This document shows, piece after piece, positions 52,201 through 61,200 of a DNA stretch of 64,000 bases; positions within the stretch are counted from its first letter, which is position 1; the number at the start of each line of letters is the position of its first letter. Below the pieces are notes generated by a model. The model saw nothing but the letters and a program-made list of their open reading frames with translations, made no database searches and was not told where the DNA came from. The DNA is from Paragordius varius (taxonomy: Eukaryota; Animalia; Nematomorpha). A program made the translations under genes and the position numbers. The stretch spans positions 1,798,001 through 1,862,000 of the forward strand of contig OZ176059.1 in assembly GCA_964247055.1 (NCBI GenBank). Direction: 5' to 3'.

Positions 52201-55200
52201 TTTTAAAAATATAATAATTAAAAAAAATGCTCTCGCTTCGCGCGCTCTTTGTGTCCAATATTAACTGTCGATATAATACATATTAGTATACATTTTATAG
52301 AGTTTTTAATACTCTTTCGAATGATATATTACAAATGGGCATTACTTGTATATTTTCAAAGAAAAACATTTTTTAGTAAAATTTTGATAAAGAGGGCGCA
52401 TAATCAAAAAAAAATTAAATTATACAAAATTCTTCCAACGAGTTATAATTTTTATTTCAGATTTACTGTTAAAATGATATTAAATATCAAAAAATGCAAA
52501 AAACTCGAGTGGCAGAAAAATTTGTTGTCTAGTATAATTCATCATTACTATGAAATATGTCTTGATGAGGGATATTATTTTTTCGGTATTAAAATTATAG
52601 ACAAAATTTCATTTTTATAAAATATAAAAAAATTTAACTAATTTTAAACTTATCAAAACACTTGATTCAAATTGTTGAATAATAAAAATTGTTCAAGATA
52701 TATTTGAATTGTTCAAGAAAGAATTTGACCTGTTTAAGGGTGAACTTTACGAATAAGGATGCCGGATTATTACCCATGAATTTTAATGAATTATCCCAGC
52801 GGGTATACATTCATATGTTATCTTTATATCAACATTTCTCTTTTATTTGCCAAACGATAAAAAAAACCGTTAAAAAATTTAAAAAAAACTAACAGACGAT
52901 TTTTATCATTGTATTATAATGTCTCTCGATATTATATACTTTCAAAAATATAAAAACTATTTGCTAATTTATTCATTTATCTAATAAAAACTTTAACAAC
53001 AAAAATATTTTTATCCATAAAAAAATATTGAAATCAATCATCATAGAATTCGGTGCAATGTAAGCATTAATGTACTCACAATCCTGAAATATGGTAAAAC
53101 GTATGATAATAGCCAAAAAAACGAAATAATTCAATAGTCGTAGGAAAATATTGAATTATAAATAGAAATAAATCCTTTTTTGCAAAATTTCAATAGAGGA
53201 ATTTCTTTCACCAACTTAAGCTTGGGGTATATTATTTAACAAACTTTCAAAGCTTTTAATTCATCCCAAAGATACGAAATAATCAAAGATACAAAAGCTT
53301 TACCCTATAATATTTATTAACATCCCAATATAAATGACTTAGTAAAATTATTAAATACTTTAGAAATTATAAAAAAAATGAAGAAACTCAAGCTTTTCAA
53401 CTCAATCCTTGGCCAAAAAAACTTGAATTAAAGTCAAATATAACTTTCAAATTTTTTAAAAAAGTTGAAATTCATGGTCTTGTTGGAAAACTTGGCAATG
53501 CATTAGCATTTGTTGGCATAGAGCCTATATGGTTAAATGACTTAAATTTTAACAATTTTTCAACTTCTCAATTCCTTAAAACCTTTTTAATTTTTTCAAA
53601 CTTAAAATCTTTAGCAACTTTCAAGCATTTCAAACTTTTTTCTACCGTAACTTCTCAATTCCGTTATTTTAAAACTTATATTTATTAAAACAACTTTCAA
53701 TCTTAAACCAAAAAAGTTTGATAAAAATTATTTAAATATCCGCAGGAAACGCTTTAAAAGTTTCTTTTTCAAACCTTTTTTTATATAAACCTCCTCAACA
53801 GGTTACTTTTTTAAAACACTTTTTAATCTACGAAAAGTTAATTTTCTTACGTTGTAATTCATGGTCTTGTTGGAATCCTTGATGATTCATAAGCATTTGT
53901 TGACATTGGGCCCACGTAGTTATATGGCTCAAATCATCCATACTTTGTAGTATTGAGCTCAACGCTTTAACATTACGTTTCCGTAATGCTTTTGCTTCTT
54001 CCTAACACGCGAAAAAAAAATTAAAATTATAAAATTGTTAAAATGGTTAAAAATTGGTTAGGAAATTGCTAAAAATATTATAAAATAAAAAATATTATAA
54101 AAGATATTATATAATAAAAAATCATTTTTTATATCTAATTATAAATTATTCAGTGAAATTTAATTGTATGGATGGATGGATGGATAATTTTAGGATTCCA
54201 TATTCGGAATTTTATATCCATGAAGTAGCTTCCTCCATAAATTACGATCTTTACATTGTTCTGTGGAAAGGCTACGTTGATTCAAGTCCATTTTTATATT
54301 ATCATTATAAGAAAAGAGTGGTCGTCCCTTTCTTCTATTGCCATCAACATTAATGTTTTCAACAGTTTTTAACGGATGGGTGGCGTCTCTTCTCTGAGTA
54401 TGACCGTATAGACGCAATCTGTTAGTTTGAATTATATAATCGATTTTATCGTTTTCTTTAATGAAAATTGGTATTTCTGGTGTACGAAAGCAGCTTTTGA
54501 GTATTCGATTCTCACTGGTTAGGAGTTTTGTTTGATTTGTTTTGTTTAATGCCCAGGTTTCAGAACCATAGGTAAGAGCAGGTCTTATTTCTGCCTTGTA
54601 AAGATACCATTTATTACGATTGTTAACATGTTTGTTTTGGAAAACATATTTTAATTGATTATATTTTATCCAACCTTGTTGTATTCTTCTTTTGATAGCC
54701 TTTTGTGGGCTTCCCTGAGATGATATGACATCTCCTAGGTATACGAAGGAGTCAACCAATTCGATGTCATGTCCATCAATGTTAAGTAGCTTTGGTCGAT
54801 TAAAATTTTTATTGCTTGGGTCTAAGCAATTTAAGCATTTAAAATTAATTACATTTGTTAACTTGTTTTTTATTTTTGAGCACTTTTTGTGTACCCACAA
54901 TTGACATGATATGCATTTAATGGAATTTGAACGTACTTCCTTACTGCAAATGGAACAGGGGTATCTGGGTGTTTCACTTTCACCCGTTATCATTATTTTT
55001 GTTTTTGTGGCGTTTATGATCATTCCATATTGTTCAAGGCATTTCTTCCACTTGGAATATGTATTTACCAGTTGATCCCATGATCGTGTCGTTATCACGA
55101 GGTCGTCGGCGAATAACATTTCCCAAGGGCATTCAGTTCTTATGTCTTGCGTTGCCGCATCCATTATAGTTATAAAAAGGAGTGGACTTAGGACTGAACC

Positions 55201-58200: not shown

Positions 58201-61200
58201 TTATAAAATATAAAAAAAAAGAACCTTTTCACGCTTAGATAAATTGTATAGGACATCCTCGTAAATTTCTTTTCTATCACGTTCCTCAACAATCTTCCAA
58301 AACTCATCATCAGCAAACATAAGTTCGGCTTTTCTATGAAAAATAAATTAAATTTTAAACTTTTTTATATAAAAACAATATAAATATATGGTTTTTTTGT
58401 AGAGAAAAATTATTTTAAAATAATATATATATATATATATATATATATATATACCATTTACAGTTCGAATTGCCCCTTAAACAATTCAAATTCACCCTAA
58501 AAAATCAAATTCACCCTTAAACAATTCAAATTCACCCTTAAACAATTAAATTCAACTTTAAACACAATTTAAATTCACCCTTAAACAATTCAAATTCACC
58601 CTTGAACAATTAAATTCAACCTTGAAAACAATTTAAATTCACCCTTAAACATTTCAAATTCACCCTTAAACAATTCAAATTCATTCTTGAAAAATTTCAT
58701 CTACCATTTATAGTTCAAATTCACCCTTAAACATTTCAAATTCACCTTAAAATAATTTAAATTCACCCTTGAACAATTCAACCCTTAAAAAATTCAATTT
58801 CACCCTTGAACAATTCAAATTCGCCCTTAAACAATTCATATTAACTCTCGAAAAATAAATTATATTTTTTTTCAAAATCAAAAATTAACCCTATACTTTT
58901 TATATTTTTAAAAAAGGCTAAATTTTGTTTAAAATTAATATAATACTAAAAAAAATAAACTATACCCCATAAAGATATATTACATATGAATAATGAGTTA
59001 TATTAGCTGCCCAAAAACACTTAATTTATTTTTAGGGTGATTTTGATTTAAGGGTAGATTTAAATTGAAAATGATATATATATATTAATTACAAAAATAA
59101 TTCATCATCATGATCAAAATATTAAAAAATATCTTGCTACTTATAAAATATAGCAAAAACTAAGTTAATAACTAACAAATAAAAAATTCAAATTTAATTT
59201 TATTTCATTTTTTAAAAATAAATTTTTTTTAATAGCTTATGGCAAATAAATATATGTTATAATCAATCCATTTTCAAACTTTAATATTAACCTGAATCAA
59301 TTAGTATTTGAATACAGTAAAAGAAATTATATATTGAGGGACAAAACGTGAAAATATATAAAGACTACCATATTTTTCTGAAAAAACAACCAACCCCATA
59401 CCATTTAGCGGTAAAAATTGAAATTATACGGACAAAATGTAAAAATATAAAGACAACCATATATGCTTCTAAAAGACAACCCATACATTTTAAATCTTGA
59501 TTTTTTTGATTATAACTTATTATTTAACATTGAAAAGTGTGAAATACAGATATATGAATACAAATACATATATATTACTAACACAACAATTTTATATTTT
59601 ACATTTTTAATTAAATAATAGTTTACAGAGGAAAATTAAGGTTTAAAAAAGTATGGTTATTGTTTTTTAGAAAAGAATATTTGTCTTTATATTTTTACGT
59701 TTTGTCCTTCCGTATAATTTCAATTTTTACTGTAAATATTGATTTAATTATATATATATATATATATATATATATATATATATATATAATAACGGATTAT
59801 TTAAAAGTGCAAATGGTAAATAATATAATATAAAAATTAATAACACAATCTATCATACAGTATGAGTAAGTAAATAAAGACATTGCTTAAAAGTTATTAT
59901 GAATTGCCAATCAGCTGATATGTACATAAAAGGGGCAAGGGGCAATATTATTGGCTTATAGTTAATTTTTTTACTTTTTACACTATTATTAGCCAATAAT
60001 AATTCTCTTTGCTGATCATATGCTATTTGGCAATAATTAATAATTTTTTAGCAATATATATATATATCTGTAATAATTGTAATTAAATGATTTATATGAA
60101 AAAAAATTAAGAGCTTAAAAAAGTATGGGGTTAATTGTCTTTATATATTATTTCAAGCTTTGTCCCTCCGTATAATTTTGATTTTTACTATAATTTTATA
60201 GAAATAATAAATTTTAAATAATTGATAAAAGAACAATAATAATATTATTCTATTTATAAATAAAATAAAATATAACGCATAATTTCCAATTTTCTAAACA
60301 ACAACTTTCAAAATTAAAAAATATATATATAATTTTTCCTATATAAATATTTATTTATAACTTTATAAGAATAATTTATTCAAATTCCCAAAATTTAGGT
60401 TCATTCTAAACTAATTTGTCTTCAAAATATCAAAAAAATTTCAAAAATTATAAAAAATAAAAATTTTGCATACTTGTATTTAACTGAAGAATTCATTTTA
60501 CTGTGATTTTCAAGCGTTTGTTGAAACGTTTCTTTGGCTTGCTTAATTTTTTGCCTTTTTTCTTCCTATATATATATTATATTAAATTAAAAACAAAAAA
60601 TTTAACAAAAAAAATTCATTTTTTTCATATATAAATCCAAAAATCTATTTTAAAAAGTTTTTATGTAAATATTTAATTTTTCCTACCTTCCTTTGTTGTA
60701 ATTAACGTAAAAAACAATAAATTTCCAATAATTTTTATTATTAATTAATAACCGAAAATTCCAATTCCCAAATCAGCATTTTTTTTATAACCAAAAAAAA
60801 TTTTTTTAAAAAAAATTAAATCACGGAATTTTAATATGTATATATATATACACTTAAACTAAATGGCAAAAACGCGTATAAATGATTTGTAAACCCCTTT
60901 CAAGATTTAATAAAAATTAATAAAAAATTCAATTTTTAAACTTCCCAAAAAATTATCCAAAAAATTTAAAAGTTCCCAAAAAACGCAAGTATTTACTCGT
61001 TCTTCTTTGCTTCGTTGTGTTTTATAGGCATTGAAAGCCTGTTTACGTTCATTATTAGCTTTCACAGCATGGAAACGAGGATCATCTCGGATAAGTTTAA
61101 GTGCTTGATCCCAGGAAGCATTTGTTGGAATATTCTAAACAATAATAGTTATAAAAGAATATTTTAAAGAAAATTAAAAACATTTTTAAAAAAACTTTTT

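Follow-up and report, generated by a model that had tools for sequence, protein, structure and literature searches.

A predicted HDV-like ribozyme inside a PRPF40 intron of a horsehair worm probably serves the RTE-type retrotransposon that it heads

An intron of the PRPF40 gene of a horsehair worm contains, in the sense orientation, a sequence predicted to fold into a self-cleaving ribozyme, raising the question whether this ribozyme acts for the host gene or for the retrotransposon whose 5' end it forms. Both roles had been proposed in the earlier note: scission that competes with splicing and feeds back on PRPF40 output, and release of a correctly ended LINE RNA from the host transcript. We analyzed the locus within a 64-kb window, the whole stretch of 64,000 nucleotides under study; features lie on its minus strand unless stated otherwise. 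The most probable explanation is that a full-length RTE-type element rides host transcripts and that the ribozyme serves the element, not the host. Cutting in vivo and the feeding of the element by PRPF40 transcripts are what we infer from the sequence.

The host gene is a PRPF40 homologue. Eleven exon HSPs align it with the Gordionus ‘pre-mRNA-processing factor 40 homolog B-like’ protein at 50–87% identity (tblastn, each exon searched singly), and the exon encoding FF1 matches the FF1 domain of human PRPF40A (1e-11). The exon upstream of the intron, in the FF-domain region (58225–58332), has a weak FF-domain Pfam match and ends in phase 0 with the residues SKREK; residues 331–367 of the Gordionus protein (P0077) align to 58335–58225 at 62% identity. 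The downstream exon (53851–54001) is matched by residues 368–417 at 54001–53852, with 72% identity, and is followed by the donor C/GTAAGA at 53850. Residues 367 and 368 adjoin exactly across the intron, so that the exon junction is colinear with the PRPF40B-like protein. The downstream exon had no relatives in the PDB, since no structures of the later FF domains have been solved. The WW and FF domains of the gene and its colinearity with a named ortholog identify it as PRPF40.

The intron (54002–58224) is 4223 nt long and in phase 0, with the donor AAG/GTTCTT at 58224 and the acceptor ttag/G at 54002. Its 5' splice site, GTTCTT (58219–58224), carries T, C and T at positions +3, +4 and +5. It is the weakest of the seven donors mapped in the gene and the only one that does not begin with GTA, the other six being GTAAAT, GTATGC, GTAAGA, GTATGA, GTATGT and GTAATA. 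The donor is unchanged in read-derived contigs (run X2, records 7 and 8). GTTCTT does not fit the U12-type consensus RTATCCTT, and the next GTA that could provide an alternative in-frame donor lies beyond a stop codon. The intron position is conserved in Gordionus (L010, 9212–11989), where the donor reads GTAATG. Between the donor and the retrotransposon, a fold-back, MITE-like repeat of about 283 bp with no assigned strand occupies 57885–58167, with inverted arms at 57885–57944 and 58105–58167; it is very high in copy number and forms the deepest bin in all four sequencing runs.

The predicted ribozyme spans 57516–57448 and matches the Rfam family drz-agam-1 (RF01787) with 39.4 bits, above the gathering score of 37 (cmscan, E 2e-4). 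It is the only gathering-level Rfam match in the 64-kb window. Other HDV models score below gathering: 28.2 against 50 for RF00094 (HDV_ribozyme) and 25 against 44 for HDV-F-prausnitzii. When the nested double pseudoknot was built by hand, all five helices paired, with 7 + 2 + 8 (one bulge) + 3 + 4 standard pairs. P1 runs from G1·U41 to C7–G35, placing a G·U wobble at the cleavage site. P1.1 consists of C26–G43 and C27–G42, P2 has 8 bp with A16 bulged, P3 has 3 bp, and P4 has 4 bp closed by a GAAA loop. L3 reads UCCCCGU, with its U...G, and the catalytic C57 (window position 57460) lies in J4/2, GCUAAC. Scission is predicted between 57517 and 57516. A strict HDV descriptor returned this site as its only solid match in the window; the other match, at 44333, is AT-rich and due to chance. 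We found no covariation support, as there is a single copy in the window and the contigs of the nearest relatives lack an HDV-like fold. In the nine contigs that encode the nearest RTE proteins (33–35% identity), cmscan at E<=1 detected no ribozyme, a permissive HDV descriptor of our own yielded nothing but noise, and the strict descriptor gave nothing. Metagenome contigs were also searched for the exact pattern of the ribozyme core, with 0 matches.

The earlier note's account of a sense ribozyme in PRPF40 pre-mRNA, about 700 nt past a weak donor in a 4.2-kb intron, is borne out, coordinates included; the cleavage site lies 708 nt downstream of the donor. The structure of the insertion indicates to what the ribozyme belongs. 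The element occupies 54170–57516 (3347 nt), limits that are set by a perfect 14-nt direct repeat, the target-site duplication (TSD), with one copy, ATACAATTAAATTT, at 57517–57530 on the 5' side and its partner at 54156–54169 on the 3' side. Before the insertion the intron would have measured 862 nt. The first 69 nt of the element are the ribozyme. A 5' UTR of 261 nt with several upstream ATGs follows (57187–57447), and then an intact single ORF of 998 aa (54190–57186, ATG at 57186). The ORF encodes an APE endonuclease (Exo_endo_phos, aa 18–185), a reverse transcriptase (RVT_1, aa 529–736) and a PHD/C1-like Cys finger, and contains the motifs QE, GDFN, GDH and FADD, the last in the reverse transcriptase. 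No other sense ORF of at least 60 aa is present in the element, and hence no ORF1. The 3' UTR or tail (54170–54189) is, read directly from the sequence, the 20-nt AATT(ATCC)4, with no poly(A). The nearest protein relatives are equal in length, at 33–35% identity, and are encoded on unnamed metagenome contigs of 3.2–3.9 kb. By its ORF layout, its length of about 3.3 kb, its short simple-repeat tail and its TSD, the element is classified as an RTE-type non-LTR retrotransposon, and the perfect TSD and intact ORF mark the insertion as recent. A search of the window for further RTE copies or fragments found none.

The TSD reaches to 57517 and the element, as delimited by the TSD, opens at 57516, which is G1 of the ribozyme, so that the predicted cleavage site coincides with the start of the element. 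This coincidence is good, if indirect, evidence that cleavage by the ribozyme determines where the retrotransposed RNA begins. The same 5' end would be expected from an internal promoter with its start at +1. We suggest the following course of events. An abundant RTE-type element would have inserted recently, full-length and in the orientation of the gene, into the 862-nt PRPF40 intron. Any upstream promoter, here that of PRPF40, would transcribe through the element, and the ribozyme would cleave immediately before its G1. The RNA freed in this way would begin with the element's first base and could then be translated and reverse-transcribed at new sites. Any effect on PRPF40 would be incidental to a young insertion, arising from intron scission or from the polyadenylation-type hexamers AATAAA and ATTAAA, of which 22 lie on the sense strand.

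Release of a LINE RNA from a host promoter, as the earlier note proposed, is a known mechanism, because promoterless, ribozyme-headed RTEs within introns have already been described. According to a review that draws on Ruminski, Webb, Riccitelli and Luptak (2011), RTE and baggins retrotransposons that carry HDV-like ribozymes have no promoter and are transcribed within introns (PMC6765202). The likely role of such ribozymes is 5'-end processing (PMC7761336). The present element shares with those elements the same fold at the extreme 5' end of a promoterless APE LINE (RF01787), a host intron as the expected place of transcription, and the proposed freeing from a co-transcript, with a score here above the family threshold. 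It differs in its host phylum, nematomorph as opposed to mosquito or other insects, and in the PHD/C1-like finger of its ORF. Perere-3, an RTE-clade element of Schistosoma mansoni (PMC8501958), is likewise a single-ORF APE element that inserts non-specifically with a TSD and has an efficient 5' ribozyme setting the 5' end of its RNA; that ribozyme, however, is a twister variant, whereas the one described here has an HDV fold. In R2 (PMC3774820), an HDV-like ribozyme also releases the element from a host co-transcript, cleaving at the 5' junction or very near it. R2, however, uses a restriction-like endonuclease, one fixed 28S rDNA site and a Pol I co-transcript, in contrast to the APE, non-specific site and Pol II intron at this locus.

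Sequencing reads, in the form of assembled contigs from four runs, show that copies of the RTE family are very numerous: in run X2, 10,741 contigs were placed, of which 1,213 are 99% or more alike. Within the element, the ribozyme bin has the greatest depth. One copy in run X5 (record 24) diverges from the window sequence no more than 5 nt from G1, and therefore lies at a different insertion site while sharing the 5' end. At the other end of the element, X2 record 1 spans 53700–54197 without differences, reaching 28 nt into the RTE tail. It had been suggested that the PRPF40 copy is a source element whose private bases would recur in the youngest RTE copies. The proposed correct 5' end fits the TSD abutting G1, but the private bases of this copy (for example at 54590, 55474, 55826, 56335 and 57123) occur in no family contig of the four runs, and there is therefore no indication that it has given rise to progeny. 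Because rare variants are lost from contigs, this absence of visible progeny is weak evidence.

The missing progeny would also be expected if the copy were inert, that is, if the element were silenced transcriptionally or post-transcriptionally, or if the ribozyme misfolded in its context, leaving neither LINE RNA nor an effect on the host. Consistent with this possibility, RNA-labelled runs of organism A contain next to none of the words of this stretch. We nevertheless consider an inert copy distinctly unlikely. An intron of a presumably constitutively expressed gene must be transcribed, and the AT-rich upstream flank does not compete with folding of the ribozyme: P1, P3 and P4 are retained in both the MFE and the centroid fold when 100 nt of upstream intron are included.

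If the ribozyme is active, does it serve the host as well? The proposal was that scission competes with splicing of the weak-donor intron and tunes PRPF40 output, with feedback through the role of PRPF40 at U1 and the 5' splice site, in the manner of the CPEB3 ribozyme. The ribozyme is canonical and in sense, the donor is the weakest in the gene, and 3515 nt separate the cut site from the next exon. Elongation rates of about 3.5–4.1 knt/min are quoted for long mammalian genes, and the half-life of the Cpeb3 ribozyme is 2–3 min (PMC10919898). At the mammalian rate the polymerase would cover the distance in about 1 min; a delay of minutes would arise only if elongation were several-fold slower here. 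The same source reports that fast intronic ribozymes abort splicing and that antisense block of the Cpeb3 ribozyme raises Cpeb3 mRNA, but also that slow intronic ribozymes have no effect on splicing (Fong 2009, via PMC10919898).

Like CPEB3, the present ribozyme is a sense intronic HDV fold located kilobases before the next exon, for which kinetic competition with splicing is plausible. The CPEB3 ribozyme, however, is conserved at one orthologous position across mammals and lies outside any mobile element, and its effect on the host mRNA has been tested with antisense reagents (PMC10919898). The ribozyme described here is the start of a TSD-bounded RTE and has no counterpart in the Gordionus ortholog; it is thus neither independent of a mobile element nor conserved. 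The orthologous Gordionus intron (L010, 9212–11989) contains no RTE, no ribozyme and no Rfam match. With the insertion absent there, nothing points to selection for a function in the host; since the ribozyme is not conserved in Gordionus and is part of a recent insertion, an evolved role in tuning the host is unlikely. The feedback loop is pure conjecture and, as drawn, would be self-reinforcing rather than homeostatic. Splicing factors are not known to autoregulate by such positive feedback. Together with the youth of the insertion, this makes a CPEB3-like regulatory device at this locus highly improbable.

A cost to the host without regulation is conceivable on the same kinetic grounds. The ribozyme would cut PRPF40 pre-mRNA and measurably lower its yield, and the insertion would be a mildly deleterious polymorphism heading for loss or silencing. 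Sample S2 (run X4) bears on this point: one contig ceases to match the window at 54155/54156, and 57525–57908 is covered by a diverged haplotype (records 9, 14 and 15). These could represent an insertion-free allele, a candidate empty site. Splicing may, however, still proceed after the cut if the 5' exon stays tethered to Pol II. We regard such a cost as possible but rather unlikely.

A stronger version, in which severing of the pre-mRNA past the weak donor matters so much that PRPF40 output falls self-reinforcingly on the insertion allele, is a long shot. PRPF40 is a U1-associated factor that binds the Pol II CTD, and it may itself hold the 5' exon on the polymerase. If this version were true and the insertion polymorphic, the locus would provide natural alleles for testing whether intron continuity matters in co-transcriptional splicing in an animal.

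The preferred reading, an RTE-type element that would ride host transcripts and free itself with its own ribozyme, makes this locus a clean, fully annotated case, from a phylum that has received little study, of a strategy already known for retrotransposons. Comparison of filled with empty alleles, of sense with antisense copies, and of full-length with 5'-truncated copies would amount to a natural experiment on whether intron self-scission has a cost for the host in vivo.

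The PRPF40 homologue lies on the minus strand, with matching exons across 63506–45482 that were searched singly rather than as a joined spliced model. The FF1 exon matches FF1 of human PRPF40A (1e-11), and its HMMER matches among 1.84 billion representatives include P0077, a protein of the horsehair worm Gordionus sp. whose cluster is named ‘pre-mRNA-processing factor 40 homolog B-like’. Searched against the window with tblastn, P0077 yields eleven exon matches at 50–87% identity, on the same strand as the retrotransposon reading frame, as the earlier note had claimed. Residues 331–367 end at 58225 and residues 368–417 begin at 54001; residues 367 and 368 thus meet across the gap, which confirms the intron 58224..54002 to the base, in phase 0. 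The intron is now 4223 nt long and was 862 nt before the insertion. Its donor is AAG/GTTCTT, and the predicted cleavage site lies 708 nt downstream, so the description of a ribozyme about 700 nt past a weak donor in a 4.2-kb intron is accurate. ‘Weak’ is fair because the six other donors placed in the gene all begin GTA(A/T), the Gordionus donor at this intron is GTAATG, and GTTCTT recurs in read-derived contigs of an independent public run (X2, records 7 and 8). Neighbouring introns contain partial duplicates of PRPF40 exons (63172–63032 versus 63349–63228; 50220–50134 versus 49256–49104): there is a second coding copy of a peptide ending in KEK, and part of the exon for residues 404–433 recurs about 1 kb upstream. 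Between the donor and the retrotransposon sits a fold-back (MITE-like) element of about 283 bp (57885–58167; arms 57885–57944 and 58105–58167). No other bin comes close to its depth in any of the four read sets (summed contig depth in the millions), which places it in a very high-copy family.

The element measures 3347 nt (54170–57516, minus strand) and is delimited by a perfect 14-nt direct repeat at 57530–57517 and 54169–54156 (minus-strand sequence ATACAATTAAATTT); its first base is the first base of the ribozyme, G1. The ribozyme is followed by a 261-nt 5' UTR, a single 998-residue ORF (ATG at 57186 to the stop at 54190) and a 20-nt tail, AATT(ATCC)4, without poly(A). The ORF encodes an APE endonuclease, a reverse transcriptase (RT) and a weak PHD/C1-like cysteine finger; the catalytic motifs QE, GDFN, GDH and FADD are legible in its translation. 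Judged from sequence, this architecture is RTE-type. The assignment rests on architecture rather than phylogeny because the closest proteins in a collection of 5.8 billion are unnamed and only 33–35% identical; they are equal in length and lie on contigs of 3.2–3.9 kb. The finger (54826–54957, residues 744–787; PF00628) follows the RT domain directly and is common to these relatives (P0003–P0007), and therefore marks a lineage of RTE-like elements. On their contigs, a conserved 5' UTR motif (CAGGAAGGGCATCCG...AAATTTGCC) lies just upstream of the ATG (L005, ~230–280; L007, ~235–285; L008, ~430–480); no HDV-like fold was found at this motif.

The ribozyme itself (57516..57448, minus strand) is the sole gathering-level Rfam match of the whole window, to drz-agam-1 (RF01787; 39.4 bits, threshold 37). 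With the threshold relaxed, HDV_ribozyme and HDV-F-prausnitzii also give weak matches at this position, and no other HDV-like place appears in the 64 kb. Threaded by hand, its 69 nt form a complete nested double pseudoknot. P1 runs from G1.U41 to C7-G35, P2 has 8 bp with one bulged A, P3 consists of A22-U34, C23-G33 and C24-G32, and P4 has 4 bp closed by GAAA. In L3 (UCCCCGU), C26 and C27 pair with G43 and G42 as P1.1; J4/2 (GCUAAC) carries the putative catalytic cytosine, C57, at 57460. Adding 100 nt of the AT-rich intron upstream leaves P1, P3 and P4 in place in the minimum-energy fold and in the centroid fold alike; the context thus provides no helix that would obviously compete with them. 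The z-score of the plain MFE does not stand out, as expected of pseudoknotted folds. Directly 3' of the ribozyme, both folds contain an 8-bp hairpin in the 5' UTR (CUAAUGAU...AUCAUUAG, 57413–57436).

RTE and baggins elements that carry an HDV-like ribozyme at the 5' end have been described (Ruminski 2011, as excerpted from PMC6765202), and a review agrees (PMC7761336); parallels exist in R2 (PMC3774820) and in Perere-3, an RTE headed by a twister ribozyme (PMC8501958). As in the known RTE and baggins elements, the ribozyme would process the element RNA out of the host transcript. Such a mechanism predicts what is seen at the 5' end: the target-site duplication meets G1 exactly, and a second copy, in run X5, departs from the window no more than 5 nt from G1 (record 24). 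The proposal that host promoter and ribozyme together release a LINE RNA thus fits, and describes a mechanism already known from the literature. Its second half, that this copy is a source element, fares less well. The window contains no second copy or fragment, and the family is very abundant in public runs: in X2, 10,741 contigs align to the stretch with an identity of at least 90%, and 1,213 of these reach 99% or more. None of the contigs aligned to the window from four runs carries its base at 54590, 55474, 55826, 56335 or 57123. These private changes argue against a prolific source, weakly, because contigs lose rare variants.

The insertion is present in the X2 sample, where a 1640-nt contig matches 53700–54197 with no differences, from the downstream exon through the duplication into 28 nt of the RTE tail (against a bridging rule of 31 letters). 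In S2, the sample of run X4, a contig over 53933–54155 departs from the window at 54155/54156, one base short of the 3' duplication, with 38 unplaced letters, and contigs over 57525–57908 in the upstream intron differ at about six sites; these may represent another haplotype or an allele lacking the insertion. Runs X5 and X6, labelled organisms B and C, contain low-depth pieces 99–100% identical to the element, with a spread of diverged variants resembling organism A's and a copy at a different insertion site. They could come from worm DNA present in a host sample, from a sister species or from horizontal transfer.

The Gordionus PRPF40 locus carries a phase-0 intron at exactly this position (L010, 9212–11989; 2778 nt), with a standard donor, AAA/GTAATG, and neither an RTE-protein nor an Rfam match within it. 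Neither the insertion nor its ribozyme is thus a conserved feature of PRPF40; both are lineage-specific, and the weak donor is likewise specific to the window's lineage. CPEB3-type host ribozymes, in contrast, are defined by two features that this one lacks: conservation at an orthologous position and independence of mobile elements.

The earlier note's observation is thus confirmed and its interpretation partly supported. That scission might compete with splicing and tune PRPF40 output makes mechanistic sense. When synthetic ribozymes are placed in introns, fast ones abort splicing and slow ones do not (Fong 2009, as related in PMC10919898); the Cpeb3 ribozyme has a half-life of 2–3 min, and blocking it raises Cpeb3 mRNA (PMC10919898). 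Here the next exon lies 3515 nt beyond the predicted cleavage site, about 1 min of transcription at the mammalian rate quoted there and less than that half-life, so for the race to be comparable, the polymerase would have to be slower or the ribozyme faster. The host might also be affected through the 22 sense AATAAA/ATTAAA hexamers on the element's A-rich strand, versus 4 antisense. A PRPF40 feedback loop is speculation; it would be positive feedback rather than homeostasis, because a fall in PRPF40 would impair use of the weak donor, increase the loss after cleavage and so lower PRPF40 further. With so abundant an RTE family in a genome rich in introns, chance alone should place a sense copy in one splicing-factor gene or another.
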